Of a stretch of 64,000 nucleotides of DNA, positions 5,451 to 63,118 are shown one piece after another. The DNA lies in the sequence record MG655267.1; one strand, given 5' to 3'. The position numbers and the translations under genes are program-made. The stretch's first letter is position 1. The number at the start of each line of letters is the position of its first letter. Under the pieces are notes generated by a model. The model saw only the letters and a list, made by a program, of their open reading frames with translations. It did no database searches and was not told where the DNA came from.

Positions 5451-5661
5451 AGTTAACATCGAGCAGGCCAATCGTTATGAGGGGTCTACCGATGATTTGG
5501 TCCAGCAAGCTAATGATCGTGGTTTTCTCCAGGGGATTCGTATCACTTCTGGCGAGGACATCGATCCAAGCATTTGGACGCCTGAGAAGATCGAAAAGTT
5601 GAAAGCTGCACTTCGACATATTCGTGACTCAGAACAACGCATCAAAGGTAGCCAGGGGTAA
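5431..5661 (+). CDS. Hypothetical protein
   Basis: GTG 5431 preceded by GAGGG; the stop sits inside a hairpin. Confidence 0.55.
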   Translation: MDINPTEVNIEQANRYEGSTDDLVQQANDRGFLQGIRITSGEDIDPSIWTPEKIEKLKAALRHIRDSEQRIKGSQG

Positions 5662-5680
5662 CACCCTGGCTTTATGCCGG
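5651..5680 (+). terminator. Hairpin + TTATGCCG gene-end element
   Basis: GCCAGGG-GTAACA-CCCTGGC followed by TTTATGCCGG. Confidence 0.6.
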
Positions 5681-8473: not shown

Positions 8474-8525
8474 CGGCATATAGGCCCTCCGTAATGGAGG
8501 GCCTTTTATGACATCTTTTTTTTTT
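8474..8525. terminator. Bidirectional terminator between convergent genes
   Basis: CGGCATA + AGGCCCTCC-GTAAT-GGAGGGCCT + TTTATG...T10. Confidence 0.8.
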
Positions 8526-11599: not shown

Positions 11600-12511
11600 A
11601 TGAGTGATTTTACTGACTTAACGAAATTGAAGACCGAATTACCACAAAACATCCAAAAGATTGATGAGCAGGATGATGTGGGTGACTTCAGCGATCTTAA
11701 CGACTACCTCATGACCATCATTCCGGATGAACGGCGTGAGCGCTTGATCGCGATCTGTCAAAACCTGAGCACCCTGCAATATCATCAAGTCCAGCCCGAT
11801 GTGGATCGGTTACTGATGATGGCCAACGACGGTGAAGCGCCGTCGGTACTCGATGACTTGACCCGGTTGTTATTTGAACACGCTTATGACTTAACGAAAA
11901 ACATGGGCTTTAACTGGGCTGATGAGATTGAGTTTGATCAGCTGTTCCTGCTCGGTGATGTAATCGAAGGTGCCATGTTGATTGATGGCATGGAAGACTA
12001 CGGCGACCTCTCAGCGATCCTGGATGGGGATGACTCAGTTGAAGAGAAGGTGGTGGATATCTGGGGCCTGGTGCTCGACAAAGACATGCACCATCTCTTT
12101 GAACAGATCCAGTCCATCGAACCGGCGGTGATCAGCGGGATCAAGCAAGTCACGACCCGACCGTATGCCGAAGACGATTATGCAGATGTGCAGCGCCCAC
12201 TTGAGTTCGTGGTTGAGCGGTTGGTGAAAGTCCGTGAAATGATGAAGACCGATGGCATTGCTTACCAGCATGTGGCCAAGGGCGGGGCATTAGGCGTTGA
12301 GCTCGATTCACTGATCACGCTCTACACCCCTGAGTTGAATGCCGTGACCGATCCGATCGAACTGACCGACCTGCTGGTTGCCTTTACCCTGATCAGCAAC
12401 ACCCCGGATGGGTTGGTGAAATCCACCGCATCCCGGTTGGCAGAAAAATGGATTGATGATATCGAAGTCATCAATGTGGTAGGTAAACATATCGACAGGT
12501 ATCCCGTGTGA
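11600..12511 (+). CDS. Acidic protein, probable virion component (phiKZ gp79-like position)
   Basis: AAGG SD; 303 aa; Asp/Glu-rich; GTGA overlap with the RNAP subunit gene. Confidence 0.7.
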   Translation: MSDFTDLTKLKTELPQNIQKIDEQDDVGDFSDLNDYLMTIIPDERRERLIAICQNLSTLQYHQVQPDVDRLLMMANDGEAPSVLDDLTRLLFEHAYDLTKNMGFNWADEIEFDQLFLLGDVIEGAMLIDGMEDYGDLSAILDGDDSVEEKVVDIWGLVLDKDMHHLFEQIQSIEPAVISGIKQVTTRPYAEDDYADVQRPLEFVVERLVKVREMMKTDGIAYQHVAKGGALGVELDSLITLYTPELNAVTDPIELTDLLVAFTLISNTPDGLVKSTASRLAEKWIDDIEVINVVGKHIDRYPV

Positions 12512-13818
12512 ATATTCGCGACTATTTAATCATGGCCTTTCGGGCAGGGGCTTACAAGCAACGCCAGTGGGTGTTGAGTGTCATGAGTATCACCCAGACC
12601 CCGGATGGTAAATCCGTAGCAGACAGTATGATCCCGTATCAGGCACACCGCATCAACATCGGTGCGACACTCGATTGGGCTTACTGGGACGACTTCAACA
12701 AAACCTTTGTGCCGATCGAGGGAGTGGATGTTAACTTCCCGTTGTTTCGACCCGAGGATCAATACACACTACAACCTGGGGATTTCGCCAATGTCACTGA
12801 AGAAGTTACTACTACTTTCGGCCGTATTCTGGCTAACCATTATTATTTTATCGATGTGGTCGGTGAACGTGTCCCCTTTCAGAACGTAGAATTCAACCGC
12901 GGGATGCTGGAGAAGATCTACAAGGCCCGGGTATTAGAAGACGCCCAGGACTTGCGGCGTTCTGATCCGTTCTACCTGACCGTCGATGAATTCAAACGCT
13001 CCGTGGATAATGGCTTTGCCTTGGGTGGGTTGTCAAAACTCTGTGTGCCGACTGCTTGTCCGGAAACCATGTACCCGCCGAAGTTCATCATCGAAATGCG
13101 TGACCGTCTGTTTGAAGAGCACAAGGATGAGCTCAACAACCCGGTGGTCATGGGGCGTATTCAGGATGAGCTGTTAAAGCACTATCGTGAGTTCCTGATG
13201 TCCACCCCGTCAGCCAAGTTCTTTGTGATCAAGAAGACCATCGACCAGGCCTTCAACAACATGTTCCTGACCGGTGGTATTGCGGGGGCTTTTGGTGGTA
13301 ACACTGTTATTACCAACTCGCTGTACGAAGGCTGGAACCTGAAGAACTTCCCGGCGTTAGTGAACGGCTCTATCGAAGCTTCCTTTGACCGTGGTGCAGC
13401 TACAGCTGATGGCGGCGAGAAAGTGAAGATGTTGATCCGTGCCACGCAGAACATCCGTATCACCGATGATGATTGTGGAACTCAGCTTGGGGTGCCGTGG
13501 GTGATTGAAGATGCCGGCAAGGCACGCTTCATTAACTCTTACATACTGGATAAGGGTGTGACGATTCTGTTAACTCCGGAGAACATTGATAAGTTCGTCG
13601 GTAAACCAGTCATGACCCGTTCACCCAGCTTCTGTAAGAAATCCCATGGCGACTCCTGTAAGTTCTGCGTCGGTGCGCATAACGCCACCAACCCACGCGG
13701 GATGTCTTCTGGTACCTCGAAGATCGGTTCTACCCTGATGTTGTTATCGATGAAAGCGATGCATAAAGGCAGTAAGATCGATCTGATCGAGTATAACCTT
13801 GATGAGGTCTTTAACTGA
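12508..13818 (+). CDS. rpoC: Virion RNA polymerase beta-prime subunit, C-terminal part (phiKZ gp80-like)
   Basis: Bridge-helix-like DRGAATADGGEKVKML, ITDDDCGT, Zn site RSPSFC...CKFCVG and trigger-loop-like IGSTLMLLSMKAMH. Confidence 0.88.
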   Translation: MNIRDYLIMAFRAGAYKQRQWVLSVMSITQTPDGKSVADSMIPYQAHRINIGATLDWAYWDDFNKTFVPIEGVDVNFPLFRPEDQYTLQPGDFANVTEEVTTTFGRILANHYYFIDVVGERVPFQNVEFNRGMLEKIYKARVLEDAQDLRRSDPFYLTVDEFKRSVDNGFALGGLSKLCVPTACPETMYPPKFIIEMRDRLFEEHKDELNNPVVMGRIQDELLKHYREFLMSTPSAKFFVIKKTIDQAFNNMFLTGGIAGAFGGNTVITNSLYEGWNLKNFPALVNGSIEASFDRGAATADGGEKVKMLIRATQNIRITDDDCGTQLGVPWVIEDAGKARFINSYILDKGVTILLTPENIDKFVGKPVMTRSPSFCKKSHGDSCKFCVGAHNATNPRGMSSGTSKIGSTLMLLSMKAMHKGSKIDLIEYNLDEVFN

Positions 13819-13873: not shown

Positions 13874-14590
13874 ATGTATGGTCTATTGATCTTAGCACTA
13901 CCCCGGTCACCGTACGTCCACATGAGTGCGATGACTGCGGACAGGTTTACTGAACTGCTCCCACAACTCCAGAAAGAGCTCGATGCAGATATCTTTCCTA
14001 ATGTGTGTTTCCAGGGTGCATTCAATGTCAGTAATACCCGTACGGTCACTCAGCTGTTTATTCCGTGTAGCGGATTGGTGGCGGCACGGGAGTTGGGGTA
14101 TGAACAGATCCGCAATATTCTCGCCAACCCAGAGAAGGAAGTCCAGCATGTCACCAACATCGGTGATTGGCTGGGTATTCCTGGTAAGGTGATGTTTGAT
14201 AATGCGGATGGATCTGTGGATGAGGTCGTTGTGACTGACATGTACAAATATCTGGTACATGAAAGAAGAGAGCGCTCTGTCTTTCGGTTCAGTCCTATTG
14301 ATCTTAGTATAACCGATACCGAACCATTACCAACTCACCTCTACCCACGTGATCATTTCTACGACCAGGTCTACCTCGACAAAGACGGCGAGCGTGCTTT
14401 CCTGTCTTACGGGTCGTGCGGTGAGGAAGGCTGTGTCATAGAACCCAGAGAAGAGAAACCCGTGCAAGTGTACGGCGTTACCTACTCGTCACTGGATGAA
14501 GTGGCCCGATGCTATAACCTGCCTGAGCAGTACGTGAAAGAACGCGTTGAGTCTGACAGCCTTGAATGGCTGGAGTGGTCATATTTGTAA
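13874..14590 (+). CDS. Hypothetical protein with C-terminal NUMOD1/IENR1-like HTH; paralogue of 18136..18918
   Basis: AAGGAG SD; VTNIGDWL and VTDMYKYL motifs shared with 18136..18918; C-terminal GVTYSSLDEVARCY. Confidence 0.75.
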   Translation: MYGLLILALPRSPYVHMSAMTADRFTELLPQLQKELDADIFPNVCFQGAFNVSNTRTVTQLFIPCSGLVAARELGYEQIRNILANPEKEVQHVTNIGDWLGIPGKVMFDNADGSVDEVVVTDMYKYLVHERRERSVFRFSPIDLSITDTEPLPTHLYPRDHFYDQVYLDKDGERAFLSYGSCGEEGCVIEPREEKPVQVYGVTYSSLDEVARCYNLPEQYVKERVESDSLEWLEWSYL

Positions 14591-14718: not shown

Positions 14719-14916
14719 ATGACCACAAACCCGCAGTTTATTTTCGTGGCTCAGAATTCTGATGCTACACACAGCGTAGAGAAACTGGAAGTAGGACGCG
14801 ATACCGATACCCAGAAGAACCTCACGGAACTTCGTAAAGGTTTGCCGTTCGACTTCTCGTTTATCATGTCTGAAGAGGCGATCTATCAACTTCGACAGGC
14901 AGGGCACATCAACTAA
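14719..14916 (+). CDS. Small hypothetical protein
   Basis: 65 aa immediately upstream of the Tad2-like gene; weak SD. Confidence 0.55.
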   Translation: MTTNPQFIFVAQNSDATHSVEKLEVGRDTDTQKNLTELRKGLPFDFSFIMSEEAIYQLRQAGHIN

Positions 14917-14931
14917 ACTGCTGAGGTAGTC

Positions 14932-15384
14932 ATGACGAACAAATCGGAGATCTCACACGGTGGTGGTGATCAGCCTATGGAAAAAGAGCAAAGCAACTTA
15001 TCCGTACTGGTGAACTACTCCACAGGTGTGATGGAAGGTGACCGTTTTAATTACTCGGTTGCATTGGCGCTGTTGAAAGACGGCATCAAAGTGAAACGCG
15101 AAGACTGGAAGAACGCTTTCCTGGTGTTCGTCCCGGGTAGTCAGAATGTTGAACTGCCAAAAGGGTCGCCGTATGAAGTCGCACTCCACGGTAAGAAGTC
15201 CGTTGCCAATATTCGTCCGCACATCGATCTGTACACGGAGTACGGTGAATTCGAAGTCGGTTGGACCGCCAACCAGGAAGACACCAACGCCGATGACTGG
15301 ATGATTGTCTTAGACAAGAACACCAATCAAGACGACAGTGCCGACGAAGAGAAAGAGTCCTCAAACGACGACTCGAAGTCATAA
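14932..15384 (+). CDS. tad2: DUF2829 / Tad2-like anti-defence nucleotide-sponge protein
   Basis: FNYSVALALLKDGIKVKREDW...HIDLYTEYG...WTANQEDTNADDWMIV matches the Tad2/DUF2829 pattern F..AL..LK.G..V.R..W ... W...Q.D..A.DW.IV; GAGGT SD. Confidence 0.8.
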   Translation: MTNKSEISHGGGDQPMEKEQSNLSVLVNYSTGVMEGDRFNYSVALALLKDGIKVKREDWKNAFLVFVPGSQNVELPKGSPYEVALHGKKSVANIRPHIDLYTEYGEFEVGWTANQEDTNADDWMIVLDKNTNQDDSADEEKESSNDDSKS

Positions 15385-15418
15385 ACCCCAGGAGAGCTTC
15401 GGCTCTCCTTTTATGCCC
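15379..15418 (+). terminator. Hairpin (UUCG loop) + TTATGCC element
   Basis: AGGAGAGC-TTCG-GCTCTCCT followed by TTTATGCCC. Confidence 0.7.
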
Positions 15419-15433
15419 ATTAAGGAACATGTC

Positions 15434-15793
15434 ATGAGTGAAAAGAAAGCGTTTGAAGTGGTATTGGATAGCCGTCATGAACCGTACGAGGCTTACCAGT
15501 TATTAGTGGCTCGCATCAATACCTTATTGCGCACCGGTCAAGGCTACCATGAAGTGAAACTCACGAAGTGGCAGCTTTACGATAACGGTCTTCTTATCAA
15601 AGGAGATGATGATGTGCATATCTCCTTGTTGCGTCATTTCTATTACGACGAACAACGCAATACGTTTGGTGGTGGCTTCATGGCCTTTGAGATCCTGGAA
15701 GATTTGGGTCGGTACTACAAAGTGCCCGATATCACAGAAGGGATGGGCGAGAACGTTGGCCTCGTCTTCACGGTCACGGTAACCACACCATAA
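15434..15793 (+). CDS. Hypothetical protein, tandem family member 1
   Basis: AAGGA SD before ATG 15434; KGDDDVHISLLRHFYYD aligns with member 2. Confidence 0.75.
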   Translation: MSEKKAFEVVLDSRHEPYEAYQLLVARINTLLRTGQGYHEVKLTKWQLYDNGLLIKGDDDVHISLLRHFYYDEQRNTFGGGFMAFEILEDLGRYYKVPDITEGMGENVGLVFTVTVTTP

Positions 15794-15799
15794 GAGGTT

Positions 15800-16168
15800 G
15801 TGATGAAACCACTCTTCGCCATGAAGTTTGATACCCGGGATGCGGGATTAGGGGATCAACTCGATCTCTTGCAATCACGGGTGAAGGCTTACTCTAAACA
15901 CGGCACCATGATCAAAGATGTGGCGGTGACTGCCTGGGTGGTCTGTTCGGATAACATGCCAGTTGCCGGTGATGACCCTGCTCATGTCAGTATTATCCAC
16001 CGTTACCGTTACGACATCGAACAGCAGTGTGTGGTCGGTGGGGTCAGTGCCATGGATGCTCTGCGTGAGATCTGGTCGGCGTATGGTCCTGACTCTACCC
16101 TCCCACCGTTCAGCCGGATACCCGGTGCTGTCGATATGCAATTTACCTTAACTGTGTTCACTATTTAA
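15800..16168 (+). CDS. Hypothetical protein, tandem family member 2
   Basis: GAGGT SD; contains AGDDPAHVSIIHRYRYD and VAVTAW. Confidence 0.75.
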   Translation: MMKPLFAMKFDTRDAGLGDQLDLLQSRVKAYSKHGTMIKDVAVTAWVVCSDNMPVAGDDPAHVSIIHRYRYDIEQQCVVGGVSAMDALREIWSAYGPDSTLPPFSRIPGAVDMQFTLTVFTI

Positions 16169-16181
16169 AGGAGATACCCTC

Positions 16182-16571
16182 ATGGGAGTTTCTGCTGCTG
16201 CTCGTCGTTCTAAAGAAGGGGTGTTTACCCGTAGCATTGAAGTGCGTCCAGACCACTGGAAACGGGATATCACTGATTTAGGACTGGATGTCCATAACCT
16301 GGTGTTGTGTAAACAGGAGATCGTGTCAGTGACCGTCACGGCTTGGCGGGCGTATGACGAGTGCGGTGTACTGCGTGGTAGTGCCAAAGAGTTGAAGTTA
16401 GACATTACGGAATGGTTCCTCGGTGACAAAGGCCCGGTCATTAATGATGCGATCAAACCTCTCACGTTTGCCTTCATCATTAATCAACAACGCAGCCAAC
16501 GCACGCCCTGGGTAAAAGATGTCCGCTTAGGGCTTAACCTGTCCATTGTCTACAAGAGGATTCAGCAATAA
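16182..16571 (+). CDS. Hypothetical protein, tandem family member 3
   Basis: AAGGAG SD; VTVTAW motif; C-terminal strand LGLNLSIVY. Confidence 0.72.
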   Translation: MGVSAAARRSKEGVFTRSIEVRPDHWKRDITDLGLDVHNLVLCKQEIVSVTVTAWRAYDECGVLRGSAKELKLDITEWFLGDKGPVINDAIKPLTFAFIINQQRSQRTPWVKDVRLGLNLSIVYKRIQQ

Positions 16572-16915
16572 TGGAAATTGTCCACCAACTCGATCTTAGC
16601 CACGGCTGGGAACCCTTCAACCGCCTGAAAGCCGCCTTTGCCAAGAAACCCCCGGAGGCGATCCACATCACTGCCTGGGTTGCTCATGGTTATAAAGGAA
16701 ACCTCATCGGTGATGAGCAAGTGGTGAAAGGGTCGTGCCAGGAGTGTCGGATTGATGTGACCCACATCTTCTTCCCCAGTCGGCCTGAGATCTTGATTGG
16801 TTTGTCGAGCTTCATTAACACCATTAATCGTGACGGGCCGGTGAAGATCCCGGCCTGGACCGGATCGATTACTCTTTGTCTTGAATTAGCGATAAGTTAT
16901 ACGGATAGAATTTAA
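16571..16915 (+). CDS. Hypothetical protein, tandem family member 4
   Basis: GAGGA SD; TAATG coupling; IHITAW motif; C-terminal LCLELAISY. Confidence 0.72.
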   Translation: MEIVHQLDLSHGWEPFNRLKAAFAKKPPEAIHITAWVAHGYKGNLIGDEQVVKGSCQECRIDVTHIFFPSRPEILIGLSSFINTINRDGPVKIPAWTGSITLCLELAISYTDRI

Positions 16916-17022
16916 TCGGCATATATTCTGTCTCGTTAGCGTAAGCTCGCTAAAAACCCTTTTAAAGTTTTGTATAACAAACTATCAACTTTGTAGAAAG
17001 AAACAAATAGGAAATTAATCTC

Positions 17023-18135: not shown

Positions 18136-18918
18136 ATGGCTATGACGTTCGAAAAAGAAGGGGACACGTTGCACATTGTGCGACTGAGAACCAAAGGCTG
18201 GTACCACATGACGGTAACCAGCGATCCTGATGCGAGTATGGATATCGTTAACACGAACTTACGTCAGGGCACTTTTACTGATCCACTTTTACAACACCAG
18301 TACGACATCTGTAAAAAAGAGATGGGGCAAGATCCCAATCCAAATGACATCGTTTTCCACCAGTTCGTGACCACGCCAGACCAGACCGGATATCAGTCTG
18401 GCCACTGGATGATTCGTGATCACATTCGCCACGGCTATTCACTGAAGTGCCTGACTAACATCGGTGACTGGCTTTCGACCGCAGCCTATCTTTATATCCC
18501 AGACCCTGATGATAAAGAGAGTGGTGAGAGAAAATACAAAGTAACTGACTTAGGCAAGTATCTCGACAAGGAAGAGTTGTTGGGTCACTCCGACCACCTG
18601 CCGATGTATTTCTTGCCTGATGAGGAACCGGGTGACAGCTATGATGAGTTGATTGAAACCCATCGTCTTCCGCAACCTGACAAAGGTTACTCTTGTGTGG
18701 CCATCAAGAACGGTATGTCGTTTAGTTTGCTGACGTACAACAACTCCAAGCGGGTGCTTTCAGAAGAGGAAGAACTGCAAACCACAACCGTCCCAGTCAG
18801 GGCAGATGGTTTGCTGTACAGCTCCGTCTTAGAGTTGGCTATGGCTAAGAACGCCCCAGTCTGGTTTGTCTTGGAGATGTTAACTTCCGAAACCGACCCG
18901 AACTGGCATTTCGTCTAA
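18136..18918 (+). CDS. Hypothetical protein with C-terminal NUMOD1-like HTH; paralogue of 13874..14590
   Basis: AAGGA SD; LTNIGDWL, KVTDLGKYL and GLLYSSVLELAMA. Confidence 0.75.
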   Translation: MAMTFEKEGDTLHIVRLRTKGWYHMTVTSDPDASMDIVNTNLRQGTFTDPLLQHQYDICKKEMGQDPNPNDIVFHQFVTTPDQTGYQSGHWMIRDHIRHGYSLKCLTNIGDWLSTAAYLYIPDPDDKESGERKYKVTDLGKYLDKEELLGHSDHLPMYFLPDEEPGDSYDELIETHRLPQPDKGYSCVAIKNGMSFSLLTYNNSKRVLSEEEELQTTTVPVRADGLLYSSVLELAMAKNAPVWFVLEMLTSETDPNWHFV

Positions 18919-19006: not shown

Positions 19007-20587
19007 GTGAGTGAAGCTAACCAGAACATCGTAGAAAGCTACGACGACCTGCCGAAGAACGCGCAGAAAGGTGATCGCTATACCGTGCGTGAAGACGCGA
19101 TCGTTTACGAACTCCAGGAAGATGGTTCTTGGAAAGACGTAGACATCAACGAACAGGTTGATCAGGAAAACGAAGAGCAGGCGCAGACCGAAGATGGTCA
19201 GCAGTCTGACACCGGCGCAACTGATCAACCTGCCTCTGATGAAGAGGGCGATGCCGATTCGTCTAAAACTGCAGCTACCGATGAAGAAGACCAGGTAGAT
19301 GACAACGGCGATGACAAGCAGACTCCGGCTGAAGAGAAGCAGGAAGAAGCAGCGCAGGCGGTTGATGAAACCCAACCACGTGATGACCCTTACGTACGAG
19401 GAGCGAACAGCGATGCCAATCCGGCACAACCTGAAGATGCGAATCAAACGCAAGATCAGACTGACGAAGCAGGACAAACTCCTGATTCTTCTGACGATAC
19501 CAACGCGCAGCAGGAAAGCACTGATGGCGTTGCGACGCAGGATGCGAAAGAGCAGGCTAACATCCCGGAAGGGGTAGATCCTGAAGAAGCGCAACCTGAC
19601 AACCAACCGCTGGCAGTAGCGCCAGTTGAGCAACCCCCTGTCCAGCACGAAGCGGTCGCGGTTGATCCTAACGCTGACCAGCCATCACCTGAAGCGCGTC
19701 CAGACAGCAAGATCGAAGAAGCAGCTGAACTGAACGCACAGAAAGAAGATGCGGCTCGTGATGAGATCGCTGAAGCCGGTGCCGATGCGCAAGCTGCGAC
19801 CTCTGCTGAGCAGACTGACGCTGGCAAAGCCAAAGAAGACGCACAGGCTGAAGGCCAGTTGCCGAACGATGGTGCTGCTGATGATGTCGCCGCTGGTAAA
19901 CCACGTAATGACCAGACCTACACCGAAGATCAGAAAGCAGCGAACACGCCAGCTCCTGAAATCGTGCAGGCTCAGGAAAACCATACGTCAGAGCCTGATC
20001 CGGTAGTTAGCCAGGAAGAGACCCATGTGCAGAACGCCACGGACCCTGACCAGCCGACTATCATCCCGCAGGAAGCGAAGTCTGAATCACTGGCGCATCA
20101 AGCTGCCGATCCAACGCAGGAAACTGTGTTTGTTAAGCAGGATGAAAACCTGGACCCGGAAGTGCGTGTGCTGCAACAGCGCATCGAAGAGTACATCAGC
20201 AACATGGGTGTGAACGGTAAGCACGATCGCCGTGACGGTCCGAAGTATCAGGCTCGCCTGTACAAAGACCTGCACTCCATCATGGCGCTGGAGCCAGTGA
20301 AGTTCAAGCAAGTGATGGACTACCTGCTGAACCGTGTGTATGAAGAACGTGCCGGTGCTTTCTCTGACACCTATACGCGCCGTTACTTCGATCAGCTGTC
20401 ACCGATGCACATGCAGACCGATCGCGTGCGTGAGTTTGACAACATCCTGTCGCTGGTAACCACTGTGGGTCATTCCAAAAACCGCAGTCGTGCCCTGCAG
20501 CAGGTTGATCTGCAGCGCGCCCTGAAGAACATTCAGGATGCCGGGAAGCAGCAGCGTATGGCAGCGTACTTTGATGCTCTGCGTTAA
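19007..20587 (+). CDS. Large acidic protein: N-terminal beta-knob, long D/E/Q/A/P-rich disordered region, helical C-terminal domain
   Basis: AAGGAG SD + GTG; composition seen directly; about 130 aa C-terminal globular domain. Confidence 0.82.
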   Translation: MSEANQNIVESYDDLPKNAQKGDRYTVREDAIVYELQEDGSWKDVDINEQVDQENEEQAQTEDGQQSDTGATDQPASDEEGDADSSKTAATDEEDQVDDNGDDKQTPAEEKQEEAAQAVDETQPRDDPYVRGANSDANPAQPEDANQTQDQTDEAGQTPDSSDDTNAQQESTDGVATQDAKEQANIPEGVDPEEAQPDNQPLAVAPVEQPPVQHEAVAVDPNADQPSPEARPDSKIEEAAELNAQKEDAARDEIAEAGADAQAATSAEQTDAGKAKEDAQAEGQLPNDGAADDVAAGKPRNDQTYTEDQKAANTPAPEIVQAQENHTSEPDPVVSQEETHVQNATDPDQPTIIPQEAKSESLAHQAADPTQETVFVKQDENLDPEVRVLQQRIEEYISNMGVNGKHDRRDGPKYQARLYKDLHSIMALEPVKFKQVMDYLLNRVYEERAGAFSDTYTRRYFDQLSPMHMQTDRVREFDNILSLVTTVGHSKNRSRALQQVDLQRALKNIQDAGKQQRMAAYFDALR

Positions 20588-20600
20588 TTGATCATTTGAT

Positions 20601-20652
20601 CAGCATAAGGAGAGGCCTCGCGCCTCTCCTGTTTATGCCGTCTTTTTTTTTT
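20601..20652. terminator. Bidirectional terminator
   Basis: CAGCATAA + AGGAGAGGC-CTCGC-GCCTCTCCT + GTTTATGCCG + T10, between convergent genes. Confidence 0.82.
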
Positions 20653-44575: not shown

Positions 44576-44612
44576 GCATAAGGAGAGGGCGTTTGCCCTC
44601 TCCTCTATGCCG
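44574..44612. terminator. Bidirectional terminator
   Basis: GAGCATAA-GGAGAGGGC-GTTT-GCCCTCTCCT-CTATGCCG between convergent genes. Confidence 0.8.
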
Positions 44613-63076: not shown

Positions 63077-63118
63077 GCGCATAAACAGAGGAGGAGCATT
63101 GCTCCTCCTCTTATGCCG
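63077..63118 (+). terminator. Hairpin + TTATGCCG element after the capsid gene
   Basis: GCGCATAA-AC-AGAGGAGGAGC-ATT-GCTCCTCCTCT-TATGCCG with no following U-tract. Confidence 0.75.

Follow-up and report, generated by a model that had tools for sequence, protein, structure and literature searches.

What are the four small genes that follow a Tad2-like gene in a jumbo phage, do they form one family, and does their position tell us what they do? The question is raised by positions 15434 to 16915 of the window analysed here, a stretch of 64,000 nucleotides (nt) that makes up the final 64 kilobases (kb) of the record of Erwinia phage vB_EamM_Bosolaphorus (MG655267.1). This phage belongs to Agricanvirus, whose members are jumbo phages that form a nucleus and are placed in the Chimalliviridae (PMC10299810). 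A sequence-only reading of this DNA had described a tandem array of four diverged paralogues directly after Tad2, and had proposed them as a rapidly diversifying set of immune inhibitors or sponges, or as parts of a hetero-oligomeric complex. Our analysis shows that the four genes, called M1 to M4 here, arose long ago from one small gene of ~115-130 amino acids (aa) by serial tandem duplication. It also shows that they are part of a variable accessory island that is found downstream of the gene for the beta' subunit of the virion RNA polymerase (vRNAP) and that gains, loses and swaps copies, each copy being under purifying selection. The members of the array, all on the plus strand, are the following.

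15434-15793, plus strand: M1, 119 aa, gp277 of Bosolaphorus and gp274 of RAY, family A (phrog_6658, E = 2e-59)
15803-16168, plus strand: M2, 121 aa, gp278 of Bosolaphorus and gp275 of RAY, family A (phrog_6658, E = 6e-66)
16182-16571, plus strand: M3, 129 aa, gp279 of Bosolaphorus and gp276 of RAY, family B (phrog_11644, E = 1e-88)
16571-16915, plus strand: M4, 114 aa, gp280 of Bosolaphorus and gp277 of RAY, family B (phrog_11536, E = 3e-80)

These genes are the coding sequences (CDS) BOSOLAPHORUS_277-280, which GenBank labels as hypothetical proteins, a label that gp274-277 of RAY carry as well. Bases 14900-17000 are 100% identical to Bosolaphorus and 93-99% identical to other Agricanvirus phages (RAY, Simmy50, Deimos-Minion, Special G, Ea35-70 and others). 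A Shine-Dalgarno sequence of the AAGGA, AAGAGG or AAGGAG type stands 6-9 nt upstream of each of the four, as the sequence-only reading had noticed, and the stop of M3 and the start of M4 overlap by 1 nt, an arrangement kept in phage AH06. For M2, the ATG at 15803, which the annotation and all orthologues use, is most likely the start rather than the alternative GTG at 15800. In charge, the proteins range from mildly acidic (M1 and M2) through near-neutral (M4) to basic (M3, isoelectric point 9.5); no signal-peptide-like or membrane-spanning stretch was seen in any of the four proteins.

Relatedness within each pair is evident from sequence. A full-length BLASTP alignment joins M1 and M2 (27% identity, E = 1e-13) and contains the motifs by which the first two members had originally been matched; M3 and M4 were aligned at 26% identity (E = 5e-8). 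In hidden Markov model (HMM) searches, M1 and M2 match phrog_6658, M3 matches phrog_11644 and M4 matches phrog_11536, with the whole profile covered each time, and the last two profiles also give weak cross-matches between M3 and M4 (E ~0.05). Across the pairs, no significant BLASTP similarity was found between M2 and M3; in the RAY genome at E<=1, the family A profile finds neither M3 nor M4, and the family B profile finds neither M1 nor M2. Common to both pairs are T-x-W, a W-x10-G spacing and the terminal beta strand; the last of these had been pointed out before and is real. That no known family would be recognisable was likewise borne out: none of M1-M4 matched a family in Pfam (E<=1), PF11195 included, or in NCBIfam, PDB sequence profile searches with the M1-M4 family came back empty, and the ESM Atlas held no usable match and no stored model.

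Between the pairs, the link is made by predicted structure. We modelled M2 with AlphaFold2 on an alignment of 11 sequences (predicted local distance difference test score, pLDDT, 90.5; predicted template modelling score, pTM, 0.83) and M3 on an alignment of eight (pLDDT 77.9, pTM 0.70). The M2 model has strands at residues 3-11, 38-50, 53-58, 69-72, 77-80 and 111-121 and helices at 17-33 and 84-98, and the M3 model has the same order of elements. As assigned by DSSP, this order is that of a beta-alpha-beta-beta-(short insert)-alpha-beta two-layer sandwich, in which an extra hairpin or short helix lies between beta3 and alpha2. With the M2 model as Foldseek query against BFVD, M1 orthologues were retrieved at template modelling (TM) scores of 0.85-0.88, M3 of RAY at 0.66/0.62 (E = 3.7e-3) and M4 of Simmy50 at 0.55/0.58, and the M3 model retrieved M4 of Simmy50 at 0.61/0.68, M1 at 0.65-0.71 and M2 at 0.57/0.60. 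All cross-matches among the M1-M4 orthologues in BFVD had a probability of 1.0 and stood above all unrelated viral proteins (TM <0.4). As far as the models go, M1-M4 are each other's nearest structural neighbours among the BFVD viral models. Because the structural matches are reciprocal and the T-x-W and W-x10-G features are shared, there is good evidence, through these predictions, that the four are of common descent. Inside the pairs, the description of four diverged paralogues after Tad2 thus holds by sequence; from one pair to the other it holds through the predicted folds, all four proteins sharing one predicted sandwich.

A relative of known structure did not emerge from the fold searches. 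Foldseek against the PDB returned nothing at E<=0.001. The best matches of M2 and M3 in the wide search of VIA, at Z = 5.8 and 5.2, were both to the same acetone/acetophenone carboxylase beta-subunit domain, followed by ribosomal protein S6, the little finger of Y-family polymerases and ACT-like domains at Z ~4. These scores are below the noise level of Z ~7-8 given for the tool, for which values below ~8 may mean a mere common arrangement; the two models nevertheless share the same weak top PDB matches. We therefore regard the predicted fold as a ferredoxin-like sandwich of generic type (beta-alpha-beta-beta-alpha-beta), with an insert and without a known relative, and do not call it a new fold. 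Structure prediction and fold search had been proposed as checks in the sequence-only reading, and they gave like folds for M2 and M3 and no assignment to a known structural family. Three further BFVD entries, A0A173GDU1 (Simmy50, 181 aa), A0A173GFH3 (Deimos-Minion, 121 aa) and A0A7R8MJQ2 (Klebsiella phage Eowyn, 119 aa), match the M2 and M3 models more weakly (probability 0.38-0.96, TM 0.33-0.54); judging from these models, they may be more distant family members located elsewhere in these genomes.

How has the array evolved? Within the genus, the ratio of non-synonymous to synonymous substitution rates (dN/dS) is 0-0.21 for all four genes (0.06-0.21 for M1), similar to that of the neighbouring genes and indicative of purifying selection. 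Because of these ratios and of the Shine-Dalgarno sequence that each gene possesses, M1-M4 are functional genes and not decaying copies. Comparison between species shows faster divergence in the array than in the flanking genes: from Bosolaphorus to AH06, identity is 58% for M1, 68% for M2, 39% for M3 and 72% for M4, as against 87% for Tad2 and 91% for vRNAP beta'. The pattern is mosaic, as shown by a metagenomic contig (L010) whose M1 is 87% identical to that of the window and whose vRNAP beta' is 76% identical. The clearest exchange concerns M2, of which there are two alleles with 74% amino-acid identity, a synonymous divergence (dS) of 1.26 and a dN/dS of 0.15. The first is found in Bosolaphorus, RAY, Deimos-Minion and Special G, and the second, which resembles the AH06 version, in MadMel, Ea35-70 and the contig L006. 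M1, M3, M4 and the flanking genes are 96-100% identical across the two allele groups, and in a sliding-window comparison the block of low identity (65-80% at the DNA level) coincides with the M2 open reading frame (ORF), at ~15800-16170, between flanks of 90-100%. The swap is a cassette-like replacement by recombination. A published host-range table (PMC6690015) does not separate the two allele groups. The array had been called rapidly diversifying. This stands insofar as it diverges faster than its flanks, varies in copy number and has undergone an allele swap; on the other hand, every gene is under purifying selection, no positive selection was found, and the duplications predate the genus.

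The array is set between the following features, none of which belongs to the family.

12508-13818: vRNAP beta' subunit 2 gene, upstream of the array
13874-14590, plus strand: left flanking paralogue of the variable island, 238 aa (phrog_6749, E = 1e-136)
14932-15384, plus strand: Tad2-like (DUF2829, PF11195) gene, gp276 of Bosolaphorus and gp273 of RAY; context, outside the M1-M4 family
15390-15417, plus strand: stem-loop with an 8-base-pair (bp) stem and the loop TTCG, then TTTTATGCC; phiKZ-type intrinsic terminator motif with a TATG core
18136-18918, plus strand: right flanking paralogue of the variable island (phrog_6749, E = 5e-121)
20607-20641, both strands: bidirectional hairpin terminator, with TTATGC after it on both strands and GTTTATGCCGT on the plus strand

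The stretch between the vRNAP beta' gene and M1 also holds a 65-aa gene. The two phrog_6749 genes that bracket the island are 25-29% identical to each other; the left one has a weak match to the I-TevI DNA-binding domain (E = 0.059), and in relatives it is substituted by an HD_4 gene (L010) or by a 216-aa gene (L009). Tandem small genes at 844-2394 were considered as a second array and rejected, as they bear no resemblance to the M1-M4 family.

Outside Agricanvirus, the family occurs only in a small number of related jumbo phages of Erwinia and Salmonella. An exhaustive HMMER profile search among 1.84 billion representatives returned three clusters for family A, and a word-indexed profile search returned eight proteins for family B. 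With tblastn over 50,697 phage records, matches occurred only in Agricanvirus genomes, in AH06 and, for M1, in pEa_SNUABM_37 and pEa_SNUABM_48; altogether, array members were found in 17-19 phage records. A pattern scan of IMG/VR with family B hit RAY only, and profile searches of the RAY genome gave no further copies of the family.

Copy number, which the sequence-only reading had suggested comparing, does vary among relatives. Downstream of Tad2, the genomes compared carry the following genes.

Agricanvirus, AH06 and the metagenomic contig L006: M1, M2, M3, M4
Metagenomic contig L005: M1, M2, M3, then an unrelated cysteine-rich 143-aa gene
Metagenomic contig L010: M1, an M2-like gene, M3, an unrelated 162-aa gene and the cysteine-rich gene, with an HD_4 (PF13328) gene upstream of Tad2
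Metagenomic contig L009: a single M2-like gene, M3, then the cysteine-rich gene

M4 is thus missing from three of the contigs (L005, L009 and L010), where the unrelated cysteine-rich gene is present instead, and M1 is missing from L009. The conserved cysteine-rich protein at the M4 position (L005 6805-7236, L009 6432-6863, L010 6884-7315) has an acidic tail and looks like a zinc-binding protein. The same island houses a gene of the HD_4 family, RelA/SpoT-type hydrolase-like, in L010 (3922-4542), L011 (3428-4048) and L002 (5270-5902), a hint that the repertoire of the island includes alarmone hydrolysis.

Two phages have candidate arrays at the syntenic locus without Tad2. pEa_SNUABM_37 carries one family A member there, 45% identical to M1, and, further downstream, four small tandem ORFs of 103, 124, 118 and 108 aa; in local hhalign comparisons with the family profiles these small ORFs gave co-linear, non-significant matches (probability <=12%). 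The Salmonella phage vB_SalM_SA002 has three syntenic tandem ORFs of 103, 115 and 108 aa with no adjacent Tad2. Both the M2 and the M3 model match three BFVD entries, with lengths of 103, 115 and 108 aa, at a probability of 1.0 (TM 0.54-0.69), and from the matching lengths and gene order we infer that these entries are the SA002 tandem genes.

Is the array transcribed together with Tad2? The GC-rich hairpin between them is kept in AH06, L005, L009, L010 and pEa_SNUABM_37, where the TTATGCC is invariant, and in these five relatives the stem stays paired despite sequence change. Such compensatory changes include, between L005 and L009, the replacement of a C-G pair by T-A and of an A-T pair by G-C. 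The intrinsic terminator motif of phiKZ combines a hairpin with a TTATKYYGT after it (PMC10914365), and TATG is the core of the late promoter, its G being the transcription start (PMC4666361). Because the conserved, covarying hairpin with its TTATGCC fits these terminator and late-promoter motifs, the array appears to form a separate unit, and Tad2 and the array are probably neighbours and not one operon. Transcription arriving from Tad2 would largely stop at the hairpin, and the array would re-start at ~15415 (the M1 start codon lies 19 nt further on), from its own TATG start, of the type used by the non-virion RNA polymerase (nvRNAP), inside the terminator. A unit running from M1 to gp284 is possible, since the next phiKZ-type terminator on the plus strand downstream of the array, found by scans, is the one at 20607-20641. 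The last gene of that putative unit, gp284 (19007-20587, 526 aa), has an acidic, low-complexity N-terminal part of ~380 residues rich in D, E, Q and A, which produces a strong AT skew (0.22), and a C-terminal part of more ordinary composition.

In the window, 18 copies of the motif TTATGCC are present where 6.1 would be expected, mostly in intergenic positions following hairpins; some copies have no gene after them, being placed where gene ends converge. Elements of a hairpin and TTATGC(C) are found, for example, at 772-805, 5650-5676, 8482-8510, 15390-15417, 20604-20641, 44577-44605 and 63087-63115, and two of them, situated at convergent gene ends, have the motif on both strands or in minus-strand orientation. 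These elements could be used for mapping Agricanvirus transcription units; a general terminator scan missed the phage-type element. A sigma-70 promoter scan of the sequence gave fewer matches than shuffled controls, as expected because the phage uses its own polymerases. The hairpin also bears on the start of M1, whose frame is open upstream to a GTG at 15338; the record of phage Rebecca gives a 151-aa version. As that frame would cross the conserved terminator hairpin, 15434 is most likely the start, and the 151-aa version, which overlaps both Tad2 and the hairpin, is probably an over-call.

What, then, might the proteins do? We favour, with a probability of about 0.5, a role for M1-M4 as independent non-enzymatic binding proteins acting on host components. 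Being soluble and free of any known enzyme signature, they would act by binding, each paralogue presumably on its own target and not as part of an obligate four-part complex. The targets would most likely be host components met in infection, in counter-defence or in host takeover. It is the most economical proposal because the genes are conserved, although some lineages can dispense with them, singly exchangeable, and located in an island together with Tad2 and, in relatives, with HD_4.

Several points weigh against this interpretation of the family and of its function. The homology of M1/M2 with M3/M4 rests on predicted structures; at the level of sequence profiles, hhalign of family A against family B gives probabilities of 49%, 29% and 36% depending on the alignments used, with the helix and the V-x-V-T-A-W strand aligned each time. 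The ferredoxin-like arrangement is common and is uninformative on function. Counter-defence genes are as a rule early genes, for which a late-type promoter would be out of the ordinary, and none of the RNA runs on record contains the locus. M1-M4 are not among the ~45 proteins detected by mass spectrometry in RAY and Deimos-Minion lysates (PMC6690015).

The closest competitor to independent binding proteins takes up the proposal of the sequence-only reading that M1-M4 are immune sponges or inhibitors; they would work with Tad2, each directed against a different immune signal or effector. The neighbour is indeed a bona fide Tad2-like gene, as had been stated (PF11195, E = 4.6e-14; 53 bits, the cut-off being 25); its sequence does not vary within the genus (100% identity), and its RAY product, gp273, was detected by mass spectrometry of lysate (PMC6690015). 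M1-M4 adjoin it in all Agricanvirus-like relatives, are small and non-enzymatic, and evolve as mosaic accessory genes, with a swapped M2 allele and, in relatives, an HD_4 gene added to the island. However, adjacency to Tad2 was the sole basis of the proposal. A conserved terminator stands between Tad2 and M1, and pEa_SNUABM_37 and SA002 have members at the syntenic locus without Tad2. Moreover, selection on M1-M4 is strongly purifying and not positive, and the start signal of the array is late-type. No resemblance of M1-M4 to a solved sponge or anti-CRISPR-like protein was seen, and neither Foldseek against the PDB (E<=0.001), nor the PDB profile searches, nor the wide lists of VIA contained a known anti-defence sponge (Tad1, Tad2, Acb2 and similar). 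An anti-defence role of M1-M4 is therefore possible but unsupported, and joint action with Tad2 in the manner of sponges seems unlikely to us. It is tempting to speculate that M1-M4 are a new counter-defence family with a previously unsolved small alpha/beta fold, each member neutralising a different immune component, and that the M2 alleles are alternative specificities selected by different Erwinia defence repertoires, a scenario that we also consider doubtful.

Paralogues of homo-oligomers frequently form heteromers, and M1-M4 could accordingly be the parts of one hetero-oligomeric complex, structural or regulatory, serving for instance the phage nucleus or transcription. Their genes are tightly packed, the 1-nt overlap between M3 and M4 kept in AH06 leaves room for pairwise interaction, and M3 is basic whereas M1 and M2 are acidic. 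Such a complex would nevertheless have to tolerate the absence of M4 from L005, L009 and L010 and of M1 from L009, and the replacement of M2 by a 74%-identical allele next to M1, M3 and M4 that are still 96-100% identical. With members that can be lost, or swapped with no change in their neighbours, the obligate hetero-oligomer envisaged by the sequence-only reading is improbable, and we judge one common complex quite unlikely in general.

Likewise quite unlikely, in our view, are late particle-associated or assembly proteins, for example proteins packaged and ejected with the DNA like the paralogous head proteins of phiKZ-like phages. The TATG late-promoter core directly upstream of the array, the vRNAP subunit gene in the neighbourhood and the existence of a paralogous set are compatible with this idea. 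Yet TTATGCC may be part of the terminator only, variable copy number and allele swapping are atypical for structural components, and known inner-body proteins are much larger than M1-M4. The absence of M1-M4 from the lysate proteins mentioned above also speaks against it, if weakly given how few proteins were found. Lastly, the notion that M1-M4 are decaying functionless duplicates or mis-called ORFs, which could appeal to the lack of a known function and of known outside homologues, is effectively refuted by the selection and conservation data (dN/dS of 0-0.21 at dS of up to 1.26, no ORF broken in any of the 17 or more genomes or in the metagenomic relatives) and sits ill with confident fold predictions from tiny alignments.

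Nucleus-forming jumbo phages have hundreds of genes of unknown function, and their variable islands tend to house genes for host interaction and counter-defence. In this context, M1-M4 are a real but fairly ordinary lineage-specific accessory family. A literature search retrieved no paper mentioning the M1-M4 genes. What our study adds is the reciprocal fold evidence for all four members, the exchange of M2 as an allele cassette, a series of copy numbers from metagenomic relatives, the likely arrays of SA002 and pEa_SNUABM_37, and the terminator between Tad2 and M1. Three PHROG families held to be unrelated become one structural family, its duplications are dated, and its copies are seen to act as independent, exchangeable modules. 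The four ~120-aa proteins form a compact, testable set, and the M2 cassette is a natural experiment, in that near-isogenic phages differ in a single gene. If they turned out to be true immune inhibitors, a new fold would join the anti-defence repertoire; if not, they would simply add to the lineage-specific accessory families, which is the less remarkable and at present the likelier outcome.

How does the array compare with known systems? Tad1, Tad2 and Acb2, which sequester signals, are small phage proteins without enzyme motifs, as are M1-M4, and M1-M4 adjoin a Tad2-like gene; there is, however, no similarity of sequence or fold between them. The ferredoxin-like domains retrieved above (S6, little finger, ACT and the carboxylase domain) have the same order of elements as the M2 and M3 models, but identities are 4-9%, all Z scores are below noise and the models have the extra beta3-alpha2 insert, so that the resemblance is one of architecture only. 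The tandem genes of SA002 and pEa_SNUABM_37 resemble M1-M4 in locus (downstream of vRNAP beta'), size and tandem order, and differ from them in having no adjacent Tad2 and no significant sequence-profile link. As for phiKZ, its terminator motif is matched, from sequence alone, by the 15390-15417 element (a hairpin, then TTATGCC) and by the 20607-20641 element, which is followed by TTATGCCGT; the TATG core of its late promoters is contained in the former, where a promoter may fire. Finally, the PHROG families phrog_6658, phrog_11644 and phrog_11536, of unknown function, are the Agricanvirus orthologue sets of M1-M4 themselves, which PHROGs keeps as three separate, unrelated families and which the predicted structures would join into a single superfamily.

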